Shown here piece by piece: positions 1 through 60,047 of a DNA stretch of 64,000 nucleotides. Numbering within the stretch: the first letter of the stretch is position 1; every line of letters starts with the position of its first letter. Below the pieces are notes generated by a model. It saw only the letters and a program-made list of their open reading frames with translations. It searched no databases and had not been told where the DNA came from. Location of the stretch: the IMG/VR virus record IMGVR_UViG_3300027754_000034, positions 62,001-126,000 of that record; one strand, 5' to 3'. A program made the translations under genes and the position numbers.

Positions 1-1
1 T

Positions 2-3000
2 GTCGGTGAAACATCTACCATAGAAATAATCAGTACTAGTGATTTCGATGGGGAAAGAACCCTAGGACTTCCCATTGGTCTATATAAGGGCTGGGAACTG
101 TGTAGAGTCGTTGGTGCAGAAATACAAATAGACCCGCCATCACCATCCGTTATATATGAAATATCGGCTGGAGGTACGGCCATTCTTCCGTTAGGTCTTA
201 CTTCTTATCCAGTTAGTCCTATTAAGACTACTATTGTCAACAGATTCATAAAGTCAGAGTTTCCTTATTACGATTCGAAAGTACCTAGCACTAATGCTAT
301 TTCTATACTAATTCCGGAATTAATGGAAGCCGGAGATATTCCGGATAATATTTTTACTAAAGAACGTTTTGCTGATCTTGTATCACCTAATTCTTATAAA
401 TACCCCCTTGCTGTAGATAACACGAATGCTGCTAGATTCGGGCAACAAGCCCGTTATGGCCTAGACGGTTATATTCAACCTGAGACTCTTCCCTATGACC
501 TAGGAAGCGTAAAGGTAGGGAAGTTCATATTTAATATAAATAGCGCTTCTTTATTGATGTTCGAATATACAAAAAATGGTCAGGATCTATTCATAGAGGC
601 TTTTAATGCAGGAAATCCTTCAGTACGTCATTATGTAATTGACGATCAAGCTGAAAATCCTGGTTATTTAATAACTGTAAATGTAGAGAAAACCGCAGCG
701 AACACTTACACACCAGATGTAGACCCTGACCCTTCCACCATCCTAGAACTTTCGGATAGATTCTTGGGTTATAGCATCAGGAATATTAATTCTGGAGCTT
801 ATACACTAGGTGTCCATGACTTTACACTGTTAGGAGACATAACCTCTGACTCTAGAACTCTTCAATTCGGATTAGCGACTTTATTATACTGGAAAACAGG
901 TCCGGCAAATATTTTTGATGAAAACATATTTAATACCCCGGGCGCAGATATAGTTAAGTTTACTAGTCCCTTAGCAGATAATGAAGGTGACAGTGCGATC
1001 CGCCTCGCAGATAAGATTACCTCTAATAGTACGATATTTTCAATACTTAATGCTAGATTAGAAGTCACATGTGGTGATGGAATAAATTCATATGGAGATT
1101 TCAACGGTTCTGACGCCATTTTTAAAGCTTGGCAGTATTTACATAATGATCCCGCAGATGAAAGACCTGTCGTAATCAAGATTAAAGAAGGCACATATAC
1201 TAATGCTGTTACTCTGACATTCACACGCAGTGTGACTATTGAAGGAATAGCTAAGGATAAAGTATCCATAAATCGCACTACTCCAGGGGCTACTTTAAGA
1301 TTCTTTAATACTCCAACGAACGCAAAGACTGACGTTATCTTAAGAAACCTATCCATTCTTAGTAACGAAAATTTTTGCATTTATAGTCGCGCAAATTTAC
1401 TGGTAGAAAACTGCTATCTAAATAATATAGCTATATTCGGTAATCAAGAAAATGTAATGTCCTCCTACTTAGCTCGATTCAGTAATTGTGAAATAGGTGC
1501 TTCCTCCGGTCTAAATATTCATCACAATATACATTTAATTTACGAAAATGACCCTTTACTACCTGAAAAGATTCCGCTTCCTCCAGTAGTATTCGATAAC
1601 TGTCTGATAAATAATAGTGATACCATTGATATAGGACTACTTAGAATTGACGGATCGTTTGACTATTCTGAGTTTTCAGGTGTTTATTTTGATAAATGCG
1701 TAATACGACTTGGAACCTATAGTAATGTTATTGCGCCTGACGGCATAAATACGAAAGGATTTAGAACTGAATATAATACTGGCCTAGTCGAACTACATCC
1801 CAAAACAGACGTCAGGACTGGTCCAGGGTTAGTAATTCATGAACTCAGATATGATAAGTGCCGTATAGAAGCATTAGATCAAAAATCTTTGATAATACAA
1901 CTTACTGGGGATATAACCAGTAAAGAGCATGCAGATTATGCATCTCCTTCTGATTGGGGTAAAATTGAAAATTTGACATTTGATGGTACTGAAGTATATG
2001 CTCAACTTCAAGATGCACTTGAAAAAAGACTAGCCTATTTCTCTATTGGAGCAGGTGTAAAGAGTTTAAATATACTAAATACTAATTTTTATCCTTTGAC
2101 TGTGGGGGACTTGGGATCTGTAGCTTATGTTCCAGAATGGTGGGTTTTTACCAATCCTTCAGTCAATATCACAAATGTCGGTAATCAAGATGTCAAAGCA
2201 AATATTTTAATAGGACCAAAGTCATATGTGATAAAAAACACTAAAATCAACAGTTTCCCTTGCAACTTAGGAAGTGGAGGGACAGATATGACCGACTCCT
2301 ACTTCTTGATTACTGAAAATGGTTTAGTAGAAGATTTAACGTACGAAGGCACAACTCCCCAAAAATCTAAGGGTAACGGTACCCTTAATAGACCTATTCA
2401 GCACATAATACGTGGGGTAAAAGACCTACTTAGTCCATACGTTATGGATTATTCAAAAATATCATTCAATCGGGTACTTTTGCGAGGAGCAAACATTACA
2501 GGTTTAGTTACACAGTGGGTTTGCGTATCTCCAGTGAAGATTACTGGAGATAACATAAACGTGAATGAGATGCAAATAGAAGAATGGATATCCGATAATC
2601 AAAGTAAAAGTATAGCGGCGATCGTATCTCACGGGAATGACATTAAAATCACTAATAGTAGATTTGCCGACACACAATCTGGGATCCATTTTGCAGGGAA
2701 TGGATCGGAAAACGTTAATGACAGTCCAAAAGAATCAGACAATATTACGGTTACGGGAAATTATGTAACATGTGGTAGTTACATAGGTGTTGCAAATCCT
2801 TCTAGCGGAATATTGTTCAATAACACAGGTTTTGATGCGACACAGATAAATATATCAGATAACTATGTAGTGAACATATCGTCAAATACCTTATTTGCAG
2901 GCATAAATTTGACAATACAAGAAAGACCCATTTTTCCTGATGTCTTAGTATTAAGAGACAACAATACCCCGACTTTGTTCTGTACCAACAATAAAGTCGA

Positions 3001-3793
3001 TGTTGGTTTCTCAAATATTAAATATTCCTATCGCATAAGACCTGCACAACAAAATTCCGCTTTTTCTACTACTCTCACTCCTGGTGCTGTTATATATGGG
3101 AATATAGGCGTTGTAAATAGAGGCACCATCTTAGTTCCCGACAATGCAAAATTCAATATAGCGGCATGGCAGACCCAACCAGTGCCACAGTATACGGCAA
3201 TTACAAAGTATAACGATAAATTTGGTAAAATTATTGGAGCCGAAACCGATAATCAATCGGTGATTCATGAAGCTAGACAGACCGCCAATGCTATTTTGAC
3301 TCCGAACGTAGAGCACAGATTTGGAATTCCTATCTCGGTGTTTAATCTTCCAAATAGATGGACTGTGAATTTAGATACAAATATTCAGATCACAGCTATT
3401 CCAACCGACATTTCAGATGTGTCTCTGGACTGGCAGTTTGCGATTCGTTTATACTACTCCTTTGATAATGCAGCGTGGAACATACTTCCTGATACCTATA
3501 TATTTGTTGGACCTTATGAATCTCGGGAAAAAAATCCTCCTGTACCGGCACCATTAAATTGGGTGCCATTTAATATCAATGTAAATATTCCTGGGTTTTT
3601 AGAAAACTTAGCAGTGGATCATGACAGGATATATTTTGACGTGGCAGTGATGGCCATGCCCATAGAACTAGATACCATATATAATGATATTGACGTCACT
3701 GTCAGTTATTCTGGTAATATCAGAGCTCCTCTAAAAGATTATGTTAGTGGAGCTAGAATGCTGAATAACAACTGCATGTTGATTACTCCTTGA
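2..3793 (+). CDS. Large virion/tail protein with pectin-lyase-like right-handed beta-helix region (5' end lies before the window)
   Basis: The frame of ORF 323..3793 is open back to position 2. IKIKEGTY...LTFTRSVTIEG entry motif, followed by N/I/T-rich beta-helix repeats (ITVTGNYV, INISDNYV). Confidence 0.65.
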   Translation, partial: VGETSTIEIISTSDFDGERTLGLPIGLYKGWELCRVVGAEIQIDPPSPSVIYEISAGGTAILPLGLTSYPVSPIKTTIVNRFIKSEFPYYDSKVPSTNAISILIPELMEAGDIPDNIFTKERFADLVSPNSYKYPLAVDNTNAARFGQQARYGLDGYIQPETLPYDLGSVKVGKFIFNINSASLLMFEYTKNGQDLFIEAFNAGNPSVRHYVIDDQAENPGYLITVNVEKTAANTYTPDVDPDPSTILELSDRFLGYSIRNINSGAYTLGVHDFTLLGDITSDSRTLQFGLATLLYWKTGPANIFDENIFNTPGADIVKFTSPLADNEGDSAIRLADKITSNSTIFSILNARLEVTCGDGINSYGDFNGSDAIFKAWQYLHNDPADERPVVIKIKEGTYTNAVTLTFTRSVTIEGIAKDKVSINRTTPGATLRFFNTPTNAKTDVILRNLSILSNENFCIYSRANLLVENCYLNNIAIFGNQENVMSSYLARFSNCEIGASSGLNIHHNIHLIYENDPLLPEKIPLPPVVFDNCLINNSDTIDIGLLRIDGSFDYSEFSGVYFDKCVIRLGTYSNVIAPDGINTKGFRTEYNTGLVELHPKTDVRTGPGLVIHELRYDKCRIEALDQKSLIIQLTGDITSKEHADYASPSDWGKIENLTFDGTEVYAQLQDALEKRLAYFSIGAGVKSLNILNTNFYPLTVGDLGSVAYVPEWWVFTNPSVNITNVGNQDVKANILIGPKSYVIKNTKINSFPCNLGSGGTDMTDSYFLITENGLVEDLTYEGTTPQKSKGNGTLNRPIQHIIRGVKDLLSPYVMDYSKISFNRVLLRGANITGLVTQWVCVSPVKITGDNINVNEMQIEEWISDNQSKSIAAIVSHGNDIKITNSRFADTQSGIHFAGNGSENVNDSPKESDNITVTGNYVTCGSYIGVANPSSGILFNNTGFDATQINISDNYVVNISSNTLFAGINLTIQERPIFPDVLVLRDNNTPTLFCTNNKVDVGFSNIKYSYRIRPAQQNSAFSTTLTPGAVIYGNIGVVNRGTILVPDNAKFNIAAWQTQPVPQYTAITKYNDKFGKIIGAETDNQSVIHEARQTANAILTPNVEHRFGIPISVFNLPNRWTVNLDTNIQITAIPTDISDVSLDWQFAIRLYYSFDNAAWNILPDTYIFVGPYESREKNPPVPAPLNWVPFNINVNIPGFLENLAVDHDRIYFDVAVMAMPIELDTIYNDIDVTVSYSGNIRAPLKDYVSGARMLNNNCMLITP

Positions 3794-8940: not shown

Positions 8941-9594
8941 ATGGATGTGAACCTTCATAAAATAGCGTATAGATTAGCAAAAGTACGAGATATACATGGT
9001 AAGTTCAATATCAGTTATTTTAAATCCCTCAATGACCCTGGAAAGATAAATACATATCTTGAGGAATCTCTGGAAGAAATCGGCAGGTCTACTCGTGCGG
9101 TTTTTACCCTGACCAGTTCGAAAGTAGTCAAAGTAGCGACCAATGATAAAGATCTTCCTATAGGTATTTCGCAGAACGAATCAGAAGTAAATTTTTACAC
9201 TAATCCGCTAACTAAGCTCGTTAGTACGAAAATACTGGAGTACCACCCATCATTTTACTGGATCATATCCGAACTAGTAAAACCTATATCTGATAGTGAA
9301 TTTGAAAAATTTTCTGGTGGTACTCTATCAGATATTGATTATGTGGTTTTTAGAATGGAAGACGAGTCATTGTCGGCCCAGGATATTTTAAAATTAAAAA
9401 AAGAATCCTCCGAAGGATTTCCCCATGACGATTTTATCAAATTGTTAGGGGATCTTAAAGAATCAGGGATGAAACTTAATGACTTAGCTTTATCAAGCAG
9501 TTGGGGTAGGACTTCTTCTGGAAAAGTCGTACTACTTGACTACGGTCTCACCCCAGAATTAATGAAAAATATAGAAAAAAGACGCAAAGGTTAA
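8941..9594 (+). CDS. Protein-kinase-fold (APH/ePK-like) protein with N-terminal IA leader
   Basis: GRSTRAVF, KVVKVA, QNESE, NDL..SSWG, VVLLDYG (DFG-equivalent). Confidence 0.65.
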   Translation: MDVNLHKIAYRLAKVRDIHGKFNISYFKSLNDPGKINTYLEESLEEIGRSTRAVFTLTSSKVVKVATNDKDLPIGISQNESEVNFYTNPLTKLVSTKILEYHPSFYWIISELVKPISDSEFEKFSGGTLSDIDYVVFRMEDESLSAQDILKLKKESSEGFPHDDFIKLLGDLKESGMKLNDLALSSSWGRTSSGKVVLLDYGLTPELMKNIEKRRKG

Positions 9595-10148: not shown

Positions 10149-10550
10149 ATGGATAGTTACTTTATTGAGCGAATTGCTAGTGGTATATCTAGATCAGCCG
10201 GAATTCCTAAGAAGTATGATCATATAGATTTCAAGCCACCGAAATCTGTACAAAAAGCAGCCGAATCAGGTTTAAATATGAGAGGTGAATTCGGGAGAGG
10301 CGGTACTGAAGTTGGCGTTGCTAGAGCTAGAGATTTATCAAACGATACTCAGATAAGCCCTAAGACTGCTCGAAGAATGAAGGCGTATTTTGATCGCCAT
10401 GAAATTGATAAAAAAGGAAAAGGCTGGAGCCCCAGCGGGGAAGGATACCCAAGTGCAGGTCGAATAGCCTGGTTATTGTGGGGTGGTGATCCAGGAAGGT
10501 CTTGGGCAAATAAACTGGTAAAACAAATGAACGCAGCTGACGATAAATAG
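10149..10550 (+). CDS. Conserved phage head-associated protein (GGTxVG...AWxLWGG domain) with IA leader
   Basis: GGTEVGVARARDL, RMKAYFDRHE, GRIAWLLWGGDPGRSWA. Confidence 0.7.
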   Translation: MDSYFIERIASGISRSAGIPKKYDHIDFKPPKSVQKAAESGLNMRGEFGRGGTEVGVARARDLSNDTQISPKTARRMKAYFDRHEIDKKGKGWSPSGEGYPSAGRIAWLLWGGDPGRSWANKLVKQMNAADDK

Positions 10551-10585: not shown

Positions 10586-11878
10586 ATGGACCCTGTTTTA
10601 TTAAGTAATGCTCTGAAAATTATTGCGAATAAAATAGACTATGATCAGTATCCTTCTAGATTCAAGATAGCGAATCAGCTAGAATTTTTAGTAGCAGGGT
10701 TGTTTCCCGAGTCATCCACTCCCAAATACAATGCGGAGGGCGACCTTATTAAGGTCATTCCGCCTAAATTACCTAATGCTCCGAAGGTCGAACATGGACT
10801 TAAGGAGATTACAGAAACTCGCGAAAAGAGAGAACGAGAGAGAGAGCGACAAAAATACGCTCCGGAAGTGACCGAAAAGAATCATCCTAAATCCTATGAC
10901 CAAAACACGGTTGATAAGCTAATTAAAGAAAACGTTTTATATTATGAAGTGAAGACTAAGTGTCCTTATTGTGGTTGGAGCACTGATGAAGAGACCATGG
11001 AATGTCCAATATGCGAAGAACAAGTGAAAAATGGTCGTGATCCGCATTTCAATGCTACATATAATCCGGCTCGACATGTCGTAAAAGTTTCAAAGATTTT
11101 AAAGATATATGATGTAGATTCCTTTGTAGATTACTTAAAATACAACGATAAGGATACATACTCTCAAAAAGAATTAGAAATCATCTCAGGAACCACTAAT
11201 ATCCCAGATAGTAAACTTAAAACTCAACTATTAGACTTAGGTTACAGTCTAAAGTCTCTATCTTCTAAAGATACTGACTTCGAATATTCTAGTCTAGAAA
11301 GGTTTATCACGCACATAAAGGATAATGATAAAGACTACTGTACTGAGCAGCAGTTAAATAAACTATTGAACTCCTTAAGCACAAATGGTTTACCAGGATT
11401 AAACAAGACCACCAAAGACATCGTAGCCGATCCCAATAAAGCTGAGCAAAAACTATTTTTAGAGACATATTTAGTAGAGAATGGAATTACCATCGGGGAA
11501 TTAAAGCCCACCTTTAAGCCCATGGATGATAAATCCGAAAAAATTTCTCCAAAACAAAAAGCTCTGGGAAAGAAATATTTAGAGTTATCAAAAATTTTAA
11601 AAGATAAGCATGGAGAAGATGTTCCGGCAGAAAAAGTGAAGTTATTTGTACAAGTTAATTTCTTAACGAACGTAGTGGGGGTCGGACCCGTTGTAGAAGC
11701 TTGGTTAAATGCGCAATATGAAGAAGTGGCTCGAGACTTCAGCATATCAAAGAGAGAAATATTGAAGATGATAGCTCAGGAAATGATTCCTGATGAGTAT
11801 GAGTATGGTGGTCTATATGAAGCCGTAGAAGAGGCTCTAACTAGACCCGAGTCATCAAGATTCATTAGACTATCTTAG
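10586..11878 (+). CDS. Hypothetical protein with extended N-terminal leader and Zn ribbon
   Basis: 430-aa ORF. CPYC...CPIC. The N-terminal 39 aa align with those of 53153..53710. Confidence 0.7.
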   Translation: MDPVLLSNALKIIANKIDYDQYPSRFKIANQLEFLVAGLFPESSTPKYNAEGDLIKVIPPKLPNAPKVEHGLKEITETREKRERERERQKYAPEVTEKNHPKSYDQNTVDKLIKENVLYYEVKTKCPYCGWSTDEETMECPICEEQVKNGRDPHFNATYNPARHVVKVSKILKIYDVDSFVDYLKYNDKDTYSQKELEIISGTTNIPDSKLKTQLLDLGYSLKSLSSKDTDFEYSSLERFITHIKDNDKDYCTEQQLNKLLNSLSTNGLPGLNKTTKDIVADPNKAEQKLFLETYLVENGITIGELKPTFKPMDDKSEKISPKQKALGKKYLELSKILKDKHGEDVPAEKVKLFVQVNFLTNVVGVGPVVEAWLNAQYEEVARDFSISKREILKMIAQEMIPDEYEYGGLYEAVEEALTRPESSRFIRLS

Positions 11879-11916: not shown

Positions 11917-12612
11917 ATGATAGTGAAAGGAATACCGTTACTTTCTGCGGATTCGGCCAGAAAGAGTAGTCTGACTAGTGTAATATATCATATGGATCGA
12001 GAATTCCTGTCTAAAACGGAGCAACAGGAATGGACTAATCGTAGAATATCCGAAGTAAATAAATTTTACTCGGCTTACAACGCTTTAGTAGAAAAAGGCA
12101 TAGAATTACTGGACGAAAGTACCAGTCTACAAATACTATGTCCATTTCATGATGATAAGAATAAACCTTCAGCTAGATATTATGCAGCTTCCGGAAATAA
12201 AGCAAGTCATTTTTATTGCTTTAAATGCAAAGACCGGTTAGATGGAATAGCCTTACACTCAAGATTTAATTCTAATAAATATTATGAGTCTTTATCTGCA
12301 CTAGAAAAGCGATTCGGAATTAAGGTACCTAAGAAACCTGATAATGTTCACATTCCACTGGTTGAACGGACAGCTGGTTATAAGTCTAGTGCTTGGAATG
12401 ATGTTCCTAGATTCCTCGAAATACTTGAAAATAAACTAATTAGAAACCGTCACAAAGCTACACTTCCTGAGTATATTAAAGTTAATAGAATGATGGACGC
12501 CATTAGATGGGATCATAATGTGACAGGAAGTTCGACTCCTGAAATGATATCTTCTTTAGAAAAAGCCTCAAGATTCATTGATAGTTTTTTCGTTGTCGAA
12601 GAATTACTTTGA
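11917..12612 (+). CDS. CHC2 zinc-finger protein (primase Zn-binding domain, no TOPRIM)
   Basis: CPFHDDKNKPSA...FYCFKC. Confidence 0.8.
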   Translation: MIVKGIPLLSADSARKSSLTSVIYHMDREFLSKTEQQEWTNRRISEVNKFYSAYNALVEKGIELLDESTSLQILCPFHDDKNKPSARYYAASGNKASHFYCFKCKDRLDGIALHSRFNSNKYYESLSALEKRFGIKVPKKPDNVHIPLVERTAGYKSSAWNDVPRFLEILENKLIRNRHKATLPEYIKVNRMMDAIRWDHNVTGSSTPEMISSLEKASRFIDSFFVVEELL

Positions 12613-12891
12613 TTTTCTTTTCTTTGACTTCATCCTTTTGAACATTTCTACTTGTTGAAGCCTTTCTTCAGCTTGGGTCTTCGATGGATAACATCCTCCA
12701 GACCATTCCGGATTGTTTTCGCTATATACACACCACTGCTCTTTATTCTTGGTTTTTCTAACGTAACTCACTTTAGATTCACCACGAGGCAGTGAAGATT
12801 CTGAATGCCCATAATCTGATCTGTCGCTTAGTGGAGAGCTTATCATGGCAATACGACTGGCAATACGAACTAGCATATTTTTAACATTCAT
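12604..12891 (-). CDS. Small phage protein (WCVxS...GCY...AEERLQQVE domain) with IA leader
   Basis: ATG at 12891 gives MNVKNMLVRIASRIA. The C-terminal domain resembles small head-associated phage domains. Confidence 0.7.
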   Translation of the reverse strand: MNVKNMLVRIASRIAMISSPLSDRSDYGHSESSLPRGESKVSYVRKTKNKEQWCVYSENNPEWSGGCYPSKTQAEERLQQVEMFKRMKSKKRKSK

Positions 12892-12927: not shown

Positions 12928-13524
12928 ATGCTTTGGAAATTTCCGATGAAGCCCATGAAGGTAGACGAAGATATTTTTAAAAGGGTTAATTGTGATGATT
13001 ATATCATGGAGAAAAAATATGATGGATATCGTGTCATTATTCAGAAAGATATAACCATTAAGCTATTCAGTAGACATAAGAATCGATTTGATATACCTAC
13101 GAATTTAATCGATCAACTCAATAGCATGCAGATACCTAATGGCACAGTTTTTGATGGAGAAATATGGAATTTAAATAAACGAGGTTCTTGGAATTATTCT
13201 AAAGAAGACGAGTGCAAGATTACATTATGGGATACCATGATATGGAATCATAAAGATGTTACTCATGAAACTATCGAGAAGAGATATGGGTACCTGAGCG
13301 GGCTCACTAGCGATTGTGGTAGTATAAATGTGATATCTAGACACGAAGTAAATCCTACTGTGTTCAATCAAATCAAGAAGGACGCTTACGAACACAGGAA
13401 ATTGAATGATAATAGGTCAGGATTTATCCATGGAGTGGTTCTAAAGAAGAAAGAATCTATGAGAAGGGACGATCCTAAAAGAACGAAGGAACATCCGGAC
13501 TGGTTAAAGATCGTATTGTTTTAA
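12928..13524 (+). CDS. Minimal ATP-dependent DNA ligase (adenylation domain only)
   Basis: EKKYDGYR (motif I), FSRH, FDGEI (III), WDTM (IIIa), GVVLKK (IV), WLKI (V). Confidence 0.85.
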   Translation: MLWKFPMKPMKVDEDIFKRVNCDDYIMEKKYDGYRVIIQKDITIKLFSRHKNRFDIPTNLIDQLNSMQIPNGTVFDGEIWNLNKRGSWNYSKEDECKITLWDTMIWNHKDVTHETIEKRYGYLSGLTSDCGSINVISRHEVNPTVFNQIKKDAYEHRKLNDNRSGFIHGVVLKKKESMRRDDPKRTKEHPDWLKIVLF

Positions 13525-45971: not shown

Positions 45972-46485
45972 TTTTCCTTTGTTCTTTTGTAACAGTTTTG
46001 TGGCATTTTATACATAGAGTTCGCAAATTGTCCAGGCCAGATTGCCCACCACCATCAAATACAGGAATTCTATGATCTGCGTGCCATAGAGATTTTTTAG
46101 ATTCCTTCATTGTAATCCTAAGTAACTGTAAAATATTTACAAAAAAGACGTTGGTCAGATATTGATCACCATCTTCTTTTTTTGCTTTTCTAGAAATATT
46201 TTCTAGTTCTATTTTCTGATATCTTGTATCAGTGAGGCACAACTCACATATTCCTAAATCCCTTTCATATAACGTCTCTCTCATATATTTATTATTCGAT
46301 CTTATTCTCCATTCGTGAACACATGGGTCTGAACAAAAGGTCCTCTTGGGTGGATAAACCTCTTTTTTACAGTATCGACAAAATCTATTTCCCGACGAGC
46401 TGCGTAACCCCTTTGATTCTTTTTCATTTTCTTTTATTTCTAGACGTCTTTTTTTCATATGTTTGCATTTACGTAAGGCTTCCAA
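45958..46485 (-). CDS. HNH endonuclease with N-terminal Zn finger
   Basis: CRYC..FCS..C, ERD.GIC..C, ADHRIP...GG...NLRTLC..CH. Confidence 0.88.
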   Translation of the reverse strand: MEALRKCKHMKKRRLEIKENEKESKGLRSSSGNRFCRYCKKEVYPPKRTFCSDPCVHEWRIRSNNKYMRETLYERDLGICELCLTDTRYQKIELENISRKAKKEDGDQYLTNVFFVNILQLLRITMKESKKSLWHADHRIPVFDGGGQSGLDNLRTLCIKCHKTVTKEQRKNVKK

Positions 46486-47048
46486 GATTCATATATCATT
46501 TCGCATAAAATATCATGGTTCACAATATCGTTCCATGAAGGCCTGACGGGTCTCTTTCTTAGAATCATGCCAGCCTGTTCAGGGGTTCTATTTCCCTTTT
46601 TTGCGTTACATGAATAACAGCAAGTTACTATATTGTCCCATGTAGTTTTACCACCACGACTGCGTGGAATGACATGGTCATAATTTAGTTCGTTCTCAGA
46701 TTTCTTTTTTTCGCAATATTGACATACATATAGATCTCTTTTATATACGTGAGGCCTAGTGAATGAAACATCGGCTTTTCTGAAAATGTCCTTACGACTC
46801 ATACAAACAACTGCAGGATTATATATTTTCAGATCACCTTTACCGTCATTCACATTTCGACCGAAAGCCCTAACCACATGAATGAATTCTTTAAACCTAT
46901 CACACTTAATTATACCCCATAAATCTTCATTATATTCTAAGACATTGGATATTTTATTACTAAATATCATACATATCGCTTTTTGGGAATCTACTATACT
47001 CTGCGGTAGATATGATCTAGTGAGTACAAGGGTGTTGGTTGCCGACAT
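46455..47048 (-). CDS. HNH endonuclease (McrA-like)
   Basis: RDLYVCQYC, DHVIPRSRGG..TWDNIVTCC..CN..KGNRTPEQAGM. Confidence 0.92.
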   Translation of the reverse strand: MSATNTLVLTRSYLPQSIVDSQKAICMIFSNKISNVLEYNEDLWGIIKCDRFKEFIHVVRAFGRNVNDGKGDLKIYNPAVVCMSRKDIFRKADVSFTRPHVYKRDLYVCQYCEKKKSENELNYDHVIPRSRGGKTTWDNIVTCCYSCNAKKGNRTPEQAGMILRKRPVRPSWNDIVNHDILCEMIYESWKPYVNANI

Positions 47049-49598: not shown

Positions 49599-51596
49599 AT
49601 GGCCACTGTTCTAACTCCCCCAATTCGCACGATTCTTCCCAAAACGACTCTGACATTCAATCGTGCAAATAAAAATGTCTGGATGGGTCGTTGTTATCAT
49701 ACCTCAAGTTTAATTTCGGGAAACCGAATTCTTGTAACAGGGGGAGTTGACTGCGAATTATCTAAATCTTGTGAAATATATGATATAAATACTAATACAT
49801 GGACAAAAAGCTTTAATTTAATAAGGAATCGGGAAGCTCATTGCGCAGTAGTACTAAATAGCGGAAAGGTTTTAGTAGCTGGTGGCGGATTTAGAATGCA
49901 GGACACCCTTGATTGGTATTCATATACTAACACGGGGGAATACTTCAATGGTCTGGGGTGGTATTCAGCTGCAAATTTCATTTCCGTTACAAAGTCCGGT
50001 CTTTCTGGCGTTTTATTAAATGACGGGCGAGCGTTCTTATCTGGCGGCATATTTGGAACTATTGCTGAGACCAGTTGCGATACTTACGATGAATCTACGA
50101 ATTCATTCTCACCGGCTGCATCATTAAACGTAGCCAGAGCTTTTCATACCTCCCATACACTGAGCAATGGGTTGGTGATTGCTATAGCGGGTTCGGGAGA
50201 CGTAGGAAATTATGTTGATAGTATTGAAATATATGACCCAAATTTGGATACTTGGTCCGTTTTTGGTACTACCCTAACTAATGGTGTAATCTTCCATGCC
50301 AGCGTTTTAATTGACGATGGCATTATCTTGATTTCTGGAGGTTCAAACGGAGCCCCCTTAAATGACTGTTACATATATGATTATTTCTTAGCTACTTTAA
50401 CCCCTGTCTCTTCTATGAATCAACCAAGAGCTGGACACACTTCAACTCTCATTACTAATGGGATTAATGCAGGAAAAGTATTAGTTACAGGCGGGTTTGA
50501 TTCAACTGATATTTTAAAAAGCGCGGAATTATACGATCCTCTTACAAATACATGGACACTAGTTGGAACCATGTATGAAGAAGCATGGGGTCACAGTTCT
50601 TTCGATTTAGGTAATGGAGATATTTTAAACTTCGCAGGACAAGTATCCTGGAATAATTACCTACCTCAGTTAACCACAAATAGCACCCAGAAATGTGACA
50701 CTGACGTAACCATTCCGAACATTTATCCTAGCTTCTCCTTAATCACTAGAATGACATCCAGGGATTATGCGTGTGCTTATAATAACGCAGCGGCAGAAGT
50801 CTCTGCCGTAATGGGCGGTGAAACCATTTATTTAACGGTCGGAAATACGCCCCTTACTATCACTTTGGGTGCCATGGATACTTCAGTAGCAGCCATATGT
50901 AGCACTATAAATAGCGCATCTCTTACAGCGGGAATTGATAATTTATATGCAATTCCCGTATTTAATACTACTCCAAATGTCTTTAAACTAATATCTGTAG
51001 ATAAAATATTTACTGGTAGTGGCATAATGTCGTATGCTGACTGGCAAAAGATCGGATTACCTCAGGGTTACTTAAGCGACCCTGCAGTTTCTTCAGTAGA
51101 AGAAATATCAGTTCCTTATATTAGTAATTATGTAGATAACTCTGACTCTGTAAGCAACATACAACCAATTTCCGATCATGCTAATAGAGTCACTCTCTAC
51201 ATTAAATTCAGGACAGAAGACAATTCATCTTCACACCCTAATCATGGATGGGTGGTTATAGCAGTGTTGTGGGATAATGGTGGTTCTGAAGAATATTTAT
51301 TCCTAAATGGACTAATCGAACCATTTACTGTTAACAATTTCAACGCTGGAAATCCCTTGGTCGGTATAGACTCTCAAACAGTTGGTCTTACTTCCATCCC
51401 GCCAAACATAAGCGGCTCAGCATATAATGGCGTTACTCAATCTATGATAAACCTTGAACCTCCTCCTGGAAGCACAGGTATTAGAATAGCTGTATTTACT
51501 GGTGACCCATCTATGATATTGAATAGTACCGGAGATTTTCAGTATCCCTACATAGCGCCAAAGTTGTCTTTGATGATATCTGATGGTACAAGATAA
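49599..51596 (+). CDS. Kelch-repeat beta-propeller virion protein
   Basis: About seven R..H....L..G.VLV.GG...E.YD....W repeats; GAGG RBS. Confidence 0.88.
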   Translation: MATVLTPPIRTILPKTTLTFNRANKNVWMGRCYHTSSLISGNRILVTGGVDCELSKSCEIYDINTNTWTKSFNLIRNREAHCAVVLNSGKVLVAGGGFRMQDTLDWYSYTNTGEYFNGLGWYSAANFISVTKSGLSGVLLNDGRAFLSGGIFGTIAETSCDTYDESTNSFSPAASLNVARAFHTSHTLSNGLVIAIAGSGDVGNYVDSIEIYDPNLDTWSVFGTTLTNGVIFHASVLIDDGIILISGGSNGAPLNDCYIYDYFLATLTPVSSMNQPRAGHTSTLITNGINAGKVLVTGGFDSTDILKSAELYDPLTNTWTLVGTMYEEAWGHSSFDLGNGDILNFAGQVSWNNYLPQLTTNSTQKCDTDVTIPNIYPSFSLITRMTSRDYACAYNNAAAEVSAVMGGETIYLTVGNTPLTITLGAMDTSVAAICSTINSASLTAGIDNLYAIPVFNTTPNVFKLISVDKIFTGSGIMSYADWQKIGLPQGYLSDPAVSSVEEISVPYISNYVDNSDSVSNIQPISDHANRVTLYIKFRTEDNSSSHPNHGWVVIAVLWDNGGSEEYLFLNGLIEPFTVNNFNAGNPLVGIDSQTVGLTSIPPNISGSAYNGVTQSMINLEPPPGSTGIRIAVFTGDPSMILNSTGDFQYPYIAPKLSLMISDGTR

Positions 51597-51820: not shown

Positions 51821-53114
51821 ATGAAAAATATTTCGAAAAGAGCTGATGAATTGAAACATGAAAATCATATGATGGACGTGGAAAGAATATCAATGCGGAT
51901 TGCTTTTGGGAATTCGAACTTGATCGATTCTCGATTGCTTCGTATTGCGTTTCGCGTCATAGAAGCATCTAAGGTTGATGATTTAATACTCGCTAATCCA
52001 GGTTTAGAAGAGAGTATTAAAAAACTCTCCGATAATGATCCTTCTAAAAGTAATAAATATATCGAATGGAGCGTTAAACAACTCAAACAACTGAAACAAC
52101 TGAAACTAGAAGCCACAATGGGGGATTTAATTTCCACCATACAGGCGTTTCATAAAGTTCAAAATAGACTTGAGAAGAAAGACATTAACCAATACAAGAC
52201 CTTGAAAGAACTGGAAGATGCTATAAAGGATCTTCCAGAATCCAAAACCAAAGAAAAGATCCAGGTGAAATCGGGGGCCAAAAAACTTTGGGAGAATGAC
52301 ACGCACGTACTCTTCAGGATGCATACTCAAAATGCTTGCATCGCATATGGAAAAGGCACTAAATGGTGCATAACCATGAAGGATGACAATCCTTGGGATG
52401 AATATACTAATAATAATTCTATTTTTTATTTTTTGATCGACAAAAGACCATCCGAGTCTGAATATTCAAAGATCGCTTGGAACGTCCGAAGGAATATGGA
52501 TGATAATAGCGTTGAAGAAGTCGAGATCCATGACGCTCTTGATGATTTGATAACAAATTCTACGATTCAAGGAATACCGGAGTTCAGTAATATTAATCGC
52601 ATGATCATAGAGGACGCTCCAAAGGCTCCGGATGGGCCCAATGTCTCTAAGCGAAAGGAACTTTTAAAAAAAAATTCTCGCGGATCACGACGCAGGGGAG
52701 AAAGCCGCCCTGCACGGGGCGGACCTGCGCGGGGCGAACCTAACCAAGGCGGACCTGCGCGGGGCGGACATGGCCGGGGCAAACCTGAAAGGGGGAAACC
52801 TGAGCGGGGCGTACCTGACCAATGCGGATTTGAACGAGGCGGACCTGGGCGGGGCGAACATGACCATCGCGAAACTTAACGGGGCGAATTTGACCAGGGC
52901 GTACCTGTACAATGCGAACCTTAGCGGGGCGGACCTGACCGAGGCGGACCTGACCGAGGCGGACCTGACCGAGGCGGACCTGACCGAGGCGGACCTGACC
53001 GGGGCGGACCTGACCGGGGCGAATTTGACCAATGCGAGATTGATCGGAGCGATACTGGACGGGGCAAAAACTCAGGGAGCCAATTTCACCGGAGCCGATA
53101 TGGAACCTGAATGA
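51821..53114 (+). CDS. IA-leader + WCIT (PcfJ-like) domain + pentapeptide-repeat protein, split by a +1 frameshift at an A9 run (52666-52674)
   Basis: Deleting one A gives ...ELLKKILADHDAGEKAALHGADLRGANL..., in frame with ORF 52770..53114. YGKGTKWCIT motif. A(D/N)Lxx repeats. Confidence 0.8.
52929..53018 (+). repeat. 15-bp tandem repeat x6 (ADLTE/ADLTG)
   Basis: GCGGACCTGACCGAG x4 plus GCGGACCTGACCGGG x2. Confidence 0.92.
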
Positions 53115-53152
53115 CCCGTATATATTTTATCTTTTAATGTACCATTCATAAT

Positions 53153-53710
53153 ATGAACCCTGTAAACGCATCCCGTATGATGAAGAGAATGGCTGCCGCG
53201 TTAGCGGCATCCAAGTCCCCTAACAAATCCGCCGTAGCAAAAGATCTTATGGCATTATCTGATGCCATAAACGGTAATAAGAAAGCTGAAGTTTATTTGT
53301 TAAATAAATTGGCTTTCGATCAGGATCAGGATGAGCGCACGGAGCTGTCTGACGACGTTTTTATTGAATTCCAAAAGCATTATCTTGACTGGGCAGGACA
53401 ATTCGTATACTCACAGACTTTGAAAATGGACGGTGATCATGATCACTTCATTCCTAACTACATCACCAATGGCGGTGGCAATGAATCAATGCCTCCATTC
53501 AAAGGCATAATGGTACCGTTCAATATATCAATTGATAAAGACGGAAAAGTCGTAATTTCTTACGAGGACAAATATGTTCCACAAGGGATTAGTTATTCAT
53601 TCTTTCCTGCGAAAGCTAGAGGCAATTGGTCAAAACCAATTGGAGACTCATTTGAATATTTCACTGATAATTGCCCAGAAATGGCGAACTTCATACAAGA
53701 TAACATGTGA
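53153..53710 (+). CDS. Hypothetical protein with extended N-terminal leader
   Basis: 185-aa ORF; the N-terminus aligns with 10586..11878. Confidence 0.7.
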   Translation: MNPVNASRMMKRMAAALAASKSPNKSAVAKDLMALSDAINGNKKAEVYLLNKLAFDQDQDERTELSDDVFIEFQKHYLDWAGQFVYSQTLKMDGDHDHFIPNYITNGGGNESMPPFKGIMVPFNISIDKDGKVVISYEDKYVPQGISYSFFPAKARGNWSKPIGDSFEYFTDNCPEMANFIQDNM

Positions 53711-55592: not shown

Positions 55593-55986
55593 CGGTTGGG
55601 AACCGAGGTTCCTGATGTAAAGGAGATGTGCCTTCCTGATTGATGGCTTGTGATAAAATTTCTTTTGTATCGAGACTTTGAATACTTGATAGCTTGTGAA
55701 TTCTAACGGTAAAGTTTGTTTACAATGAGCCTGCAGTCTGATCTACCTATCGTGAAGTTCAACCTGCACGTATAAGCTTCAAGAATTCTACTTACCAGAA
55801 CGATGAAATCGGAAATGACTGCTGTAAAAATAAGAGTTAGAGACGCCCAATCAATTCGTGAGGAAATACATGAACTGAAGGGAACCACGGCTTGTGATTG
55901 GATGAGAGCCGCCAAAAACCTTATCGATGAAAGAAACGAGGGAGTTGATGGGGAGGACCGAGAAGTCCTCCTATCTATAAAACCCC

Positions 55987-56784
55987 TCAAGAATTCTTGA
56001 TCGGTCCTATTACCTTGCGTATCTCTGCTGGATCTCCCTGGAATTTATAGAATCCAGTGTGGTCCAGCTTAATGGTCGGATTGGCAAAGACTCGACCGCC
56101 CATTCGTTTCCAGCGCAAACAGAAGGCCCAATCTTCGGAAAGATAGGTCCCATCTTCTGTGATTTCCGTATCATAAAGAGCATACATGAAGTGCTCACAT
56201 TCTGGGGCATATGCCAAACTATCCCGATATTTTAATTCAGGAAAAGCGTTAAACATTCGCTCGAATACGTGGCGCTTAACCAACATGAAACCGGTGCCAA
56301 GAGTATCGACTTCCACCAAGTCCTCTTTGTTTACAACCGGATCGGCGGTTAAATTCACCACATAACTAATGGGAATGCTCTTTTTAGGATAAAGACCGCC
56401 AACGACATCCTGATTATTACATAGCAACTTCAGGATGGCCTCAGGATCGAAGGCCAGGTCTACATCGATGAACATTAAATGGGTGGCTTCTGGGCATCCC
56501 ATGAACTTTGCGACCAAATTATTGCGAGCGCGCGGAATTAGCGACTCGTTATAAATGATATCCATCGTGAAATTAATTTTTAACTTAGTGGCTATAATGG
56601 CGAACTTAACGAGTCCTGCAAACGTCGATTCGCTGCACATGCCTCCGTACATCGGAAGAGCGAAATAAATGTGTTGTTCCTGTAAAAATTTTAAAGTTAT
56701 TGGGTCTAAAGTGGAAGCTCCTCCATCATTTTTATTGGGAGTGGGAGTGACTTCAAGATTTTCGTTTGATTCTTTAGATTCCAT
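55987..56784 (-). CDS. GT-A fold glycosyltransferase (phage type)
   Basis: ESLIPRARN, HLMFIDVD, GGLYPKK, GTGFMLVKR, YLSEDWAFC. Confidence 0.85.
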   Translation of the reverse strand: MESKESNENLEVTPTPNKNDGGASTLDPITLKFLQEQHIYFALPMYGGMCSESTFAGLVKFAIIATKLKINFTMDIIYNESLIPRARNNLVAKFMGCPEATHLMFIDVDLAFDPEAILKLLCNNQDVVGGLYPKKSIPISYVVNLTADPVVNKEDLVEVDTLGTGFMLVKRHVFERMFNAFPELKYRDSLAYAPECEHFMYALYDTEITEDGTYLSEDWAFCLRWKRMGGRVFANPTIKLDHTGFYKFQGDPAEIRKVIGPIKNS

Positions 56785-57101
56785 GTTTCCTAACCGATCA
56801 ATAAAACCGTACCGACTGCGCTAATTTTTCATTCAAGAATCGCCGTTTAGGTGCAGTGGACGGTTGATATGGCGATTTGTGATGTGCTGATCTCTAGAGG
56901 ACTCAAATTCGCGGGTCCACGATAAATTAGATTGACTGCTTGAATGGGAGCCGAGTCCGGTCGAATGTCCGGACCGGAGAAATCCGGAATGAGGTTGGAA
57001 TGTGTAAAGCGTATCGTGGGCGTACTCGTTCAAAGTCGGAGGGGTCTGAGGACGTGGGTTGACGGGTGGGAAAGTGAATGGATGGGTGAGAGAGGCGAAG
57101 A

Positions 57102-57135
57102 AAAGGCCCCGGGAAGCGTCTCCCTGGGGTCCTTT
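57102..57135. terminator. GC-rich hairpin / possible terminator
   Basis: AAAGGCCCCGGGA...TCCCTGGGGTCCTTT. Confidence 0.45.
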
Positions 57136-57842
57136 GTCCTTACCCCGGGTTCGCTATAATGTGGTTTAACGGAAGTACCTTTCCGGAGTCAGGAGCGTTA
57201 TCCTGGTAATTGACGTTTGCTGACGCGTATCCTGAATATAAAGGGGTGTACGGGGAATTGGAAGAATCCATAATGCGTGGGATGTCCAAGAACAATTACG
57301 GGTATACGGGAAAATAGAGAGAGATGCAATTCAGGATATACAGATTCCGGATAATTTTTATATCGATAATTTACAGATATGGGGTCTACCGATAGGATCG
57401 ATTGTCCTGGTAATATTCGGGATAATCGGTACCATACATTACCATATAGTAAATTTACAATATGACGAATTGGCATGATTGTTCGACCAATCCATGGAAT
57501 AAAGAATACGGAAATCGGTAGAAACCGATTATTGATAAACTCAGCTTCCATCCGTTAAAGAATGCTTGGAAGTAATGTAAACGAGAGTGGAAGATTTCTG
57601 ATAAAATGTAGAACGGCGGAATTACCAATAAATTTTAGTGGGGCTAAATATTCTGAATGGATACTAAACGCCCGGTAAATCGCGGAGTAATCCTTTCCGT
57701 AAATGGGTGGAATTACAGAATACCTCAATCAATTCATCAAGCACAAATAGAGAACATTAAGCAAAATATAAAATAAAGTATCCAAAATGCGTAGAAAACA
57801 CTTGGCAAAATGTTGAGTAAAGTATTCTGGATGGTGCTCCAT

Positions 57843-57955
57843 TGAATACTCGATATAAAACTCCTGTGAATACTCGATATTTTAATTGACATGCTCGATA
57901 TTTTACTTGACATGTTACTTGACATGCTCGATATATTACTTGACATGCTCGATAT
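57843..57955. repeat. Iteron-like array (TTGACATG)CTCGATAT
   Basis: TGAATACTCGATAT x2, TTGACATGCTCGATAT x3 plus a partial copy. Confidence 0.85.
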
Positions 57956-58119
57956 ATTTGGAAAACGAATTTTCATAAAAGTAGCCCTTCCTTATTCTTA
58001 TGGTCCTTGTTTGGTATCCTGATATTTTATCCGTAATTTAGTAAATTTTATTGGGTACTTCTGTAAATTTTTTGAAATTATCTGTAAATTTTACTGGGTA
58101 TTTCAGTAAACGGGAGACT

Positions 58120-58497
58120 TTAGGAAAGGTCTCCCGAAATTTTACGATCACCGGTATGCAATTTTGCTTTGACTCCAAATTCATCAATTTTATCCATGGC
58201 CATTTCCTCGGTAAGTCCACTTTGTATTAAAATGCCCGAAATGAAAGTGCCGTCTTCTGGAATTATTCCCCCTATACTGTCTTGGCAAGCTACAACTGCA
58301 AAATGAGTGGTGGTGGACATCATCCAAATACTCCAATTGCTCTCTTGGAGTTCGGCATTTTCCTTCTGCATCGAAATTAAACTATTTTGCACAAGTTTCT
58401 CAGGATTGTCTGAAATATTCAATTGTAATTCTATTAATTTGTCAATTGTTTGATCGAGGATTTCTTCCAACGCCTCTTTTATCTTCTTCATAAACAT
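58120..58497 (-). CDS. Hypothetical protein
   Basis: 125-aa ORF with natural-looking composition. Confidence 0.5.
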   Translation of the reverse strand: MFMKKIKEALEEILDQTIDKLIELQLNISDNPEKLVQNSLISMQKENAELQESNWSIWMMSTTTHFAVVACQDSIGGIIPEDGTFISGILIQSGLTEEMAMDKIDEFGVKAKLHTGDRKISGDLS

Positions 58498-58512
58498 ATG
58501 TGTAATAAATAG

Positions 58513-58581
58513 TTGCGCGATATATGGCAGATATTGCCACGATATATGGCAGATATTGCAACGATATATGGCAGGTACTGC
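58513..58581. repeat. 22-bp tandem repeat x3
   Basis: CGATATATGGCAG at 58518, 58540 and 58562. Confidence 0.9.
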
Positions 58582-58710
58582 TATGCTTGATCCTATATAT
58601 CGAGTGATTCTTCTTTTAAATTATACCAAAAACGGTGAAGACCCGGAAATTTACACGGAAACAAGTGTAAATCACGATTTATCTTCAACCAATTACAGGG
58701 TCTTCTTTGG

Positions 58711-58926
58711 TTATAAATCTTTTCTCTTGGATATTAAAAATAACGACCTCTTCATTAAATTCCGCATCTCTACTTGTAATTCGGATATTCTTTCCATGAT
58801 ACTGCACAATTCACATTCTTCGAATTTCACCCTATAAACCCCCTTTACAAGGTGACTGATAGCCCGCAGTTCCGTTCTACAATTTAGGCATTCTTTCGTC
58901 CTAGGTTTAAAAGGTATGACTTTCAT
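58711..58926 (-). CDS. Hypothetical Zn-ribbon protein
   Basis: CLNC...CELC. Confidence 0.45.
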   Translation of the reverse strand: MKVIPFKPRTKECLNCRTELRAISHLVKGVYRVKFEECELCSIMERISELQVEMRNLMKRSLFLISKRKDL

Positions 58927-58976
58927 TCTTAGGTTCTTTTTCCGAAATTGTCGAATTTATCCGAAGCCGGGAATCC

Positions 58977-59033
58977 ATTCAATTGTTCACTTCTAAAATG
59001 TTTCGGTAAAATTTTAGAAGTGAACAATTGAAT
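58977..59033. repeat. 23-bp perfect inverted repeat with 11-nt spacer
   Basis: ATTCAATTGTTCACTTCTAAAAT / ATTTTAGAAGTGAACAATTGAAT. Confidence 0.92.
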
Positions 59034-59299
59034 TGTACCATGAACGAAATACGGTAATCATAAATTTCACTTATAGAATTTTCACTTCTACAATGCGAAA
59101 AACAGATTCAGTAAATACCCAATACTTTATTGAGACATTCTGTATCTGTCCTCGACACTCCGTACAATTTTACTAAACACTTTTTACCATGTAAAGCCGA
59201 CTTGGTAGCGCCTTGCCCCTAGTCCTTGATAGAATCATAAATCGATACTTTACAGACTCTTCCCATTATGTAATTTTCTTTGAAGAATACCCAGGGAAT

Positions 59300-59968
59300 T
59301 TATATTAACTCCGAATTATTGACTATTTTAAAGGTTCCTAAGGATTTGGCTTCAGATACGGATTTTTGAAGATCATTCTTGTCCATATCTTTTGAATCTA
59401 AGTAGAACACTTCGACTTCATCATCCATTAAATGGATTTCTTCCCTTTGAGCAGAGAAATATAAATATTTAAATATTACCCTTAAAGGTGTTTCCTTTGG
59501 AAGTGGATATCCCGTCCTCAACTGATAAGAAATTTTGAAGCGTTCAACCGTCTTATCTACTTCAGGTACTAATGCAATGAAATACTTCAATCCTTCTCTT
59601 CGAAAATGGATTTTAAACCATTGCTCCGGTTTATCCTCAGACCAGAATTTCAAATGCTCCACCATCTCCCGGGATTTCTCCAAAACGAATACCGGGCTTA
59701 ATTTTCCATTCCGTACAATCCAAGCGCATCCCGCGATTTCGCCGTTCGGACATGAATCGATAGATTTTTCGATGGCTTTTTCGATGGATTCTGTCTGCGT
59801 ATTCAAATCCTGGGGCCACAGGAGCGGTACGTAGGATACAATTACAAAGGATTTCAGACTGTCGGTATCTTGCCTTGCGATGATTTCCATACTCTTTCCT
59901 GAATGAAAGACTCCGAGTTTACCGAAATTTTCTTTTAAAAACATATAAATTACATCCCCAAAACGCAC
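59300..59968 (-). CDS. Hypothetical protein
   Basis: 222-aa ORF (the start may be the internal ATG). Confidence 0.6.
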   Translation of the reverse strand: MRFGDVIYMFLKENFGKLGVFHSGKSMEIIARQDTDSLKSFVIVSYVPLLWPQDLNTQTESIEKAIEKSIDSCPNGEIAGCAWIVRNGKLSPVFVLEKSREMVEHLKFWSEDKPEQWFKIHFRREGLKYFIALVPEVDKTVERFKISYQLRTGYPLPKETPLRVIFKYLYFSAQREEIHLMDDEVEVFYLDSKDMDKNDLQKSVSEAKSLGTFKIVNNSELI

Positions 59969-60047
59969 GCGGTTTTGCGCTTTACGATAGAAAATTACTT
60001 ATTTCGCAGATTCTATTTAAAAACCACCCACCATTGGTAATTATAAA

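Follow-up and report, generated by a model that had tools for sequence, protein, structure and literature searches.

The window analysed here is a stretch of 64,000 nucleotides, bases 61,844-125,843 of a 126,943-bp IMG/VR record (CheckV completeness 30%) from a large virus that is also represented by a 257,205-bp contig, IMGVR_UViG_3300027754_000034 (G001). Two open reading frames (ORFs) in the window encode a protein of 430 amino acids (aa), which we call A, and one of 185 aa, which we call B. Both begin with a similar segment of about 40 residues, here called the module, and continue into different sequences, here called cargoes. Gene A is sited in a replication cluster, with a DnaB-like helicase on one side and a CHC2 primase on the other. 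The features in question are as follows.

10586..11878, + strand: gene of the 430-aa protein, in which the module is followed by a low-complexity linker, a zinc ribbon at about residues 123-150 and a C-terminal part without annotation
10586..10705, + strand: module copy A, a divergent family member, residues 1-40 of the 430-aa protein (independent profile, described below, E = 6e-5)
53153..53710, + strand: gene of the 185-aa protein, with the module and an unannotated cargo of about 140 aa
53153..53272, + strand: module copy B, residues 1-40 of the 185-aa protein (independent profile, E = 2.5e-10; AlphaFold2 hairpin)

The zinc ribbon of protein A gave only weak PHROG and NCBIfam matches. Protein B matched no family, and its homologues were found only among module-bearing paralogues.

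The initial annotation had described a homologous segment of 39 residues at the start of both proteins. Both ORFs are present, and the length and coordinates of the shared segment are right: conservation in the wider family collapses at positions 39-40. Aligned without gaps, residues 1-39 of A and B share 10 identities and have a BLOSUM62 score of 35, which was reached by none of 100,000 shuffles (mean -22, standard deviation 12). Among the 7,381 N-terminal pairs of the 127-kb record, this pair ranked fourth, behind two obvious paralogue pairs and one pair scoring 45; the next lower score was 21. Direct BLASTP of A against B reported no N-terminal alignment, and a two-sequence hidden Markov model (HMM) of each module gave E = 2-7 against the other, too thin to decide. 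Because of these last two results, the direct comparison taken alone is only suggestive.

Homology is carried by searches that draw on the rest of the family. For an independent profile we left out A, its orthologue P0002 and the window copy of B; the 147 module sequences that went into it were at most 44% identical to A or B. We searched this profile against the 1,252 six-frame ORFs of this genome. It found the three B-type proteins at E = 2.5e-10 to 5e-10 and A at E = 6e-5, and the next ORF had E = 1. The matches to A and B cover profile positions 1 to 44-46, from the first Met in each. A 401-aa protein (L056) bridges the two, matching residues 1-39 of A and residues 1-33 of B (BLASTP, E = 1e-4 each) and nothing elsewhere in either. 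Three intermediate copies in this virus (L009-L011, ..S-N-A-L-R-R-I-A-A-A-I-E-x-S-K-N-P-S-R-K-L-V-x-x-D-L..) lie visibly between A and B, with an ungapped core. Since the independent profile finds both proteins and L056 bridges them, we take it as confirmed that the two N-termini belong to one domain family. Compositional artefacts are very unlikely to explain the profile matches because conservation is position-specific, with P3, A14, P23 and V28 at 98-100%. In G001, the full family profile finds module A with 47.5 bits (E = 4e-13). Module A shares 67.5% of its residues with the module of P0002, the sole orthologue known of protein A (57% identical over the whole protein), and we class A as a divergent, less basic member of the family, near a subfamily with larger cargoes.

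Chance resemblance, or paralogy of A and B along their full length, would have been in keeping with the silent BLASTP and the thin two-sequence models. Both are refuted by the independent profile, the family profile and the L056 bridge, and by the lack of any similarity beyond the module (BLASTP, best E = 0.9); the cargoes of A and B are unrelated. A profile search of the kind that the initial annotation had suggested as a check returned hundreds of further N-terminal matches. We give these two explanations almost no weight.

The family consensus is M-K-P-S-x-h-x-x-x-L-R-R-I-A-x-x-I-D/E-N-S-K-N-P-x-R-x-L-V-A-x-D-L-K. Across 150 copies, the most conserved columns are P3 (99%), L10 (95%), R11 (85%), I13 (94%), A14 (99%), I17 (93%), S20 (95%), P23 (100%), V28 (98%) and D31 (86%). 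Conservation stops at position 39-40, and there is no conserved column beyond 40. An AlphaFold2 model of module B, made with the family alignment, has helices at residues 3-19 and 25-40 joined by an S-K-N-P turn, with a per-residue confidence (pLDDT) of 92-97 over residues 1-40. We are confident in predicting that the module is a basic two-helix hairpin (median isoelectric point, pI, 10.9), and in the model both prolines, with Ser/Asp, look like helix caps. The adjacent hydrophobic pairs 13/14, 27/28 and 35/36 create stripes wider than a lone hairpin can bury, and the conserved exposed residues include R11, R12, K21, R25, D31 and K33. Together, the wide stripes and conserved exposed residues suggest that the hairpin packs against a partner.

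The module resembles no domain that we could recognize. Searches of Pfam-A, PHROGs v4 and NCBIfam 20 gave no significant match over the 40 residues; the best sub-threshold Pfam matches, both on helix 1, were to Amphi-Trp (PF20068), at E 0.015-0.08, and to DUF7433 (PF24212), whose best E was 0.0035 and whose score of 17.4 bits fell short of the 24.2 cut-off. A sequence search of the PDB found only designed helical repeats and coiled coils (E >= 0.05), and Foldseek against the PDB only generic helical hairpins (E >= 3). In a wide VIA-align search, 5,469 chains were at Z >= 2 and none exceeded 5.5, which is generic hairpin background. The nearest structures in the ESM Atlas were the first two helices of the SRP54/FtsY N domain (template modelling score, TM, 0.67-0.77 over 41 residues). 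This likeness in N-terminal position and hairpin shape carries little weight at a length of 41 residues, and the SRP54_N family was not matched by the module sequence. The initial annotation had spoken of a helix-turn-helix-sized module. As a description of a DNA-binding helix-turn-helix (HTH) domain this does not hold: the model consists of two long antiparallel helices only, with no tri-helical or winged core and no recognition helix, and the sequence matched no HTH family at E <= 10 and no HTH profile or PDB sequence.

In its 257-kb record, this virus has at least six intact module copies on five unrelated cargo types, and one truncated copy. A search with B found two more proteins, P0004 (204 aa) and P0005 (289 aa, with pentapeptide repeats), whose first 54 residues are 93% identical to B and whose remainders are unrelated. 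Thus, three genes carry a B-type module (93-100% identical) and share about 28 nt of upstream DNA, each followed by a different C-terminal part. Weaker matches of module B in G001 (E about 1e-3) are three more copies: one on a 166-aa protein (L009), one on a 193-aa pentapeptide-repeat protein with a GTG start (L010), and a truncated copy of 31 codons (L011). Two of the cargoes in this virus are pentapeptide-repeat domains; the others are the 390-aa zinc-ribbon part of A and three small unrelated domains. A form of the P0004 cargo without a module is encoded at 46427-46897 of record G000 (56% identity, E = 2e-38). The proposal of a portable module on different cargoes is thus borne out within a single virus.

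The DNA around the B-type copies records how they were moved. Two stretches upstream of gene B are duplicated elsewhere, as seen in DNA alignments.

53125..53152, + strand: T-rich upstream stretch of about 28 nt, duplicated with module B on L002 and L003; a candidate promoter or translation-initiation box
53030..53124, + strand: 3' end of a pentapeptide-repeat ORF plus spacer (about 95 nt), duplicated upstream of the L002 copy and not of L003

L002 and L003 are, in turn, identical for 17 codons past residue 45. Because the B copies differ in the extent of shared flanking DNA, they form a mosaic with different recombination end-points, and we read these mosaics as showing that new module-cargo pairings arise by recombination within or beside the module-coding DNA.

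Within codons 1-40, the window copy of B differs from each paralogue copy by eight synonymous changes and one non-synonymous change, indicating purifying selection on the module peptide. These counts bear on the alternative that the 5' segment is an expression cassette, conserved for its properties as DNA or RNA (promoter, leader or translation start) rather than for the peptide. The 28 nt that were co-duplicated with module B, and the T-rich boxes that recur upstream of module genes, are what such a cassette would look like. However, the changes are mostly synonymous, family members share an amino-acid pattern despite quite different codons and G+C content, and the peptide folds confidently in the model and also occurs internally and in tandem. 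We consider a cassette highly improbable.

Public gene calls for the B-type proteins (P0003-P0005) begin at Met9 (window 53177) and lose eight conserved module residues. We conclude that 53153 is the right start codon of B, because Met-Asn-Pro is kept in all three genes, codons 3, 5 and 7 differ only synonymously, and Pro3 is 99% conserved in the family. The whole stretch Met-Asn-Pro-Val-Asn-Ala-Ser upstream of Met9 is kept in the three genes. In three viruses, most module genes are preceded by a T-rich box at a distance of 10-25 nt; overall, such a box precedes only 21 of the 122 genes of record G000, and few structural genes. A Shine-Dalgarno-like sequence was found upstream of only 10 of the 122 ORFs of that record. 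The box and the rarity of Shine-Dalgarno sequences may mark a temporal gene class or a host with Shine-Dalgarno-independent initiation.

Genes with a Mom domain (PF25680) are found near some of these copies. They are multi-copy, with six in G001 (at 45975, 179961, 196469, 231333, 243320 and 252615) and five in G003. In L009, L011 and L037 a Mom gene immediately precedes a module gene, and one also immediately precedes the module-less P0004-like cargo gene at G000 46427. One contig (G009) has 10 modules and no Mom gene, making the link partial.

To find the family elsewhere, we scanned IMG/VR with degenerate patterns and searched whole records with the profile. Seven large contigs illustrate the number of copies for each virus.

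G001 (this virus), 257 kb: 7 module copies, one truncated
G003, 242 kb: 7 module copies
G004, 111 kb: 7 module copies
G006, 193 kb: 6 module copies
G007, 202 kb: 11 module copies
G008, 184 kb: 4 module copies
G009, 308 kb: 10 module copies

A profile search of 1.84 billion representative proteins, clustered at 50% identity, matched 951 clusters with E <= 1e-3, of which 258 reached E <= 1e-10. One family member comes from an NCBI assembly, where its 296-kb contig also encodes phage-type genes. A scan of one genome each for 185,579 bacterial and archaeal species, made with one narrow peptide pattern only, found no module. The window encodes a family-A DNA polymerase, the DnaB-like helicase, the CHC2 primase, RecA, a SNF2 helicase, and Kelch and pentapeptide-repeat proteins; the DNA polymerase is less than 30% identical to that of any GenBank phage. 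Only two sequencing runs contain the region, both of DNA (freshwater and lake water) and none of RNA; their contigs yielded no further information on function. The sizes and CheckV completeness values of related contigs point to a reference genome of about 427 kb. The carriers are a clade of uncultured freshwater huge phages of that size.

In most of the family the module is N-terminal. Of the best 148 matches, 137 have it begin within residues 1-6; the 11 others are exceptions, about five of them with internal modules. In six of the 11, a Met stands exactly at the module start, suggesting over-extended gene calls. Two copies are present in 19 of the 148, and seven complete proteins of 88-103 aa (P0006, P0017, P0022, P0024, P0010, P0046 and P0058) consist of two modules and a Pro/Ala-rich linker, with no cargo. 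These could be bivalent connectors. Tandem arrays also occur, as in four consecutive genes of G007 with near-identical modules and different acidic cargoes. In G008/G009, a tail-sheath gene is followed about 1.5 kb downstream by genes for three larger module proteins (331-401 aa). A clear truncated form (L035, in G003) has the first 15 module residues followed by unrelated sequence. The G007 array (L057, 146000-151000) also holds a probable dual-specificity phosphatase (169 aa, with an HCxxGxxRS motif) and, on the opposite strand, a Lys-rich, histone-H1-like ORF of 198 aa.

The cargoes are small, diverse and acidic. Their median length is 100 aa, and 114 of them fall into 91 BLAST clusters. 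A pI below 5.5 was found for 80% of cargoes, compared to 41% of the small ORFs of this genome (Fisher P = 3e-8). Pfam, run on the 148 best matches, recognized LRV/HEAT repeats in two and otherwise isolated weak matches, and PHROGs recognized practically nothing among the cargoes. A single member matching "Mu-like_Pro / head maturation protease" (E about 1e-4) was not located among the 20 longest members and is unverified. Pentapeptide-repeat proteins are known as DNA mimics, and we infer that the repeat-type cargoes (pentapeptide, LRV/HEAT) are typical binding or DNA-mimic effectors.

We conclude that the module is a genuine, portable and so far undescribed protein domain; a full-text search of the literature found no description of it. 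A small folded tag that stays constant while its cargo varies freely has the signature of a shared docking or targeting function, and we lean towards the view that the module is a shared adaptor or docking tag at the N-terminus of diverse small acidic proteins. The conserved module surface would dock on one shared partner, giving different cargoes the same destination. The set of cargoes would diversify rapidly while the tag stays constant, new pairs being made through recombination at the tag-coding DNA.

The same hairpin could instead associate with itself, pairing into a four-helix bundle so that cargoes become dimers or mixed oligomers without a separate receptor. Broad hydrophobic stripes on a lone hairpin usually call for a second one to pack against, and the cargo-less proteins with two modules exist; an AlphaFold2 model of one of them gives four helices with a predicted TM score (pTM) of 0.60. 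Structural neighbours include the homodimerizing Qua1 hairpin of GLD-1/Quaking (Z = 4.7, not above background). However, the two-module model matches no four-helix bundle (Foldseek, TM about 0.3, root mean square deviation 12-15 A), and a pure dimerizer would need no conserved exposed charged residues across 951 clusters. A complex prediction for two module copies scored 0.02, which we counted neither for nor against dimerization. On balance, self-association without a receptor seems to us unlikely.

We find it less likely still that the module is a nucleic-acid anchor, a basic hairpin with non-specific affinity for DNA or RNA that would tie acidic and in part DNA-mimicking effectors to the phage genome or the host nucleoid. 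The high pI of the module, the conserved Arg/Lys at positions 11, 12, 21, 25, 33 and 34, the acidic cargoes, the DNA mimicry of pentapeptide-repeat proteins and the place of gene A in the replication cluster would all suit such an anchor. The charge pattern, however, is equally suited to a protein interface, two long antiparallel helices are no known DNA-binding motif, and no HTH, HhH or SAP family was matched in Pfam, NCBIfam or the PDB.

If the module is a docking tag, the destination that we rank first is the assembling virion, with effector proteins being co-packaged and ejected; this is a plurality guess by analogy, and a tentative one. We rank it first because huge phages package many effectors, the cargoes look host-directed, and one subfamily is encoded beside tail genes. 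Another phage-encoded hub, or nucleic acid, may be the destination instead.

Several observations weigh against a docking tag, or against one that leads into the virion. A tblastn search found the module in none of 50,697 GenBank phage records, and no cultured phage is close. There is no conserved prohead-protease cleavage motif after the module; [SAG]-x-E, the form of this site in giant phages, ends at positions 42-43 in only 22 of 131 members (about 17%). Prohead proteases of families PF03420 and PF04586 were not found in four partial large contigs, an uninformative result since the PF03420 control was silent. In this virus the structural block contains no module genes, and most module genes have the T-rich upstream box that is mostly absent from structural genes. 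The internal proteins of T4 are basic, whereas the cargoes here are acidic. Lastly, the doubled modules (19 of 148), the internal ones (about 5 of 148) and the cargo-less proteins are less readily explained by a cleaved leader than by a general domain for docking or self-association.

A second, shorter sequence, which we refer to as the IA leader (M-D-x-x-h-x-x-I-A-x-R-I-A, 12-25 aa), also heads unrelated proteins.

8941..8985, + strand: IA leader on a 217-aa protein; homology to the module uncertain
10149..10208, + strand: IA leader on a 133-aa protein, an extension lacking in typical homologues (only residues 21-127 match phrog_2859)
12835..12891, - strand: IA leader on a 95-aa protein, the best sub-threshold match of the first module profile (E = 1.2, profile positions 5-21)
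51869..51916, + strand: IA leader within the 51821 ORF, beginning at Met17, a possible true start
L057:3539-3970: IA leader on a further unrelated protein

About twenty of the closest homologues of the 133-aa protein carry the leader extension; typical homologues begin at K-Y-D-H-I-D-F. A leader pattern defined post hoc occurs four times in the record, compared to 0.3 expected, always within the first 45 residues. We judge the IA leader to be a second, real portable N-terminal add-on. The initial annotation went further and described the module as the long form of the IA leader. That relationship is not established: module profiles score the leader proteins at E = 1-10, and hhalign of leader against module aligns nine columns (leader I-A-x-R-I-A on module R-R-I-A-x-x-I) with 11.6% probability (P = 0.0026).

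Other observations concern the proteins that carry this leader. The domain of the 133-aa protein (10149-10550) belongs to a very large family (1,401 matches) and orthologues of the protein were not found in G003/G004. In a small phage contig (L059:314-988), the gene for the major capsid protein directly follows a fusion of this domain to an HK97-type prohead protease (Peptidase_S78); the bacterium Aestuariibius has the domain as a lone chromosomal gene. The 95-aa protein (12604-12891, - strand) weakly matches the neighbouring part of phrog_2859. The 352-aa ORF at 51821-52879 runs, in a shifted frame, into a pentapeptide-repeat ORF at 52770-53114 (PF00805, E = 8e-37), and its Arg/Gly/Pro-rich tail is the pentapeptide repeat read out of frame. 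We suspect from the sequence that a frameshift has divided a single gene at 51821-53114. A contig from run X1 covers 52644-52957 without a difference, although this run may itself be the source sample.

Elsewhere in the window and record, two adjacent ORFs of about 1,660 aa (window 1-3793 and G000 55646-60631) have near-identical N-termini (39-residue score 165) and presumably encode paralogous, fibre-like structural proteins. Paired Pro/Val-rich, collagen-like ORFs are found at G000 623 and 1196. A short candidate for an ATP-dependent DNA-ligase-like protein is encoded at window 12928-13524, its K-Y-D-G motif recognized by eye only. The Kelch-repeat protein (665 aa, 49599-51596) has repeats that are unusual for a phage.

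We speculate, as one tentative possibility, that the freshwater phages of about 427 kb possess a cargo-delivery system not described before, in which the module serves as the address tag and would dock on one phage-encoded receptor, the prohead interior being its most plausible site. For each genome, some dozen or more hypervariable acidic effectors, such as DNA mimics and repeat proteins, would be loaded and delivered into the host together; in this scheme the MD..IAxRIA leader would be a minimal second form of that signal, or of a parallel one. Hundreds of genes in a huge phage lack annotation. Whatever its destination, the module brings many of them (951 clusters) under one rule, in which a variable acidic cargo comes after a conserved basic hairpin. 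It marks out a set of proteins that evolve fast and are probably host-directed effectors, and its partner would reveal their site of action. Should the module prove to be a loading signal, foreign proteins might be sent to that destination with it, as has been done with the capsid targeting sequence (CTS) of T4. The analysis also yields a seed alignment for a new domain family and corrected starts for the public entries of the 53153-type proteins.

Precedents for a shared docking or targeting tag are found in phages and bacteria, which use several kinds of N-terminal sequence to bring unrelated or variable proteins to one place. The CTS of T4 is an N-terminal tag on unrelated proteins that suffices to send cargo into the prohead, and its cargoes are injected effectors (PMC5694885). 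Like the CTS of the internal proteins and Alt, the module is found at the extreme N-terminus of unrelated proteins in one large phage. In contrast, the CTS is an unstructured or amphipathic peptide of 10-20 residues and is removed by the prohead protease at L/I-x-E, whereas the module is predicted to be a folded hairpin of 40 residues and has neither a conserved cleavage motif nor any sequence similarity to the CTS. The giant phages SPN3US and phiKZ have paralogous head and ejection proteins that vary in number, and N-terminal segments of these proteins are thought to target the head (PMC5694885). Here too, the phages are giant and the many module proteins vary in count from phage to phage. 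However, the SPN3US and phiKZ paralogues are homologous along their length, with propeptides of 20-130 aa and A/S-x-E sites, whereas only the 40-residue tag is common to the proteins described here, and the lineage of this virus is unrelated.

Polymorphic toxins have a conserved N-terminal trafficking domain and a hypervariable C-terminal cargo that is swapped by recombination at the conserved part (PMC12226406). The module has the same general plan, a conserved N-terminal domain joined to exchangeable and unrelated C-terminal domains. The MuF, LXG and Rhs/PAAR domains differ from it in having 100-500 aa and being in Pfam, and the module matches no known trafficking family; scans of family libraries recognized no toxin or immunity domains in the cargoes. 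The RIIa and DPY-30 docking domains of eukaryotes are helix-turn-helix structures of about 40 residues with a Pro-containing turn, found at the N-terminus of diverse proteins; they form homodimeric X-type four-helix bundles and dock many cargoes on one scaffold helix. The module is like them in its size, its N-terminal place and its Pro-containing turn, and it matched neither RIIa (PF02197) nor Dpy-30 (PF05186) in Pfam at E <= 10. A constant N-terminal domain on varied cargoes is thus a known type of architecture; what is new is the domain itself, its size class as a folded tag of 40 residues, and the lineage of phages that carries it.

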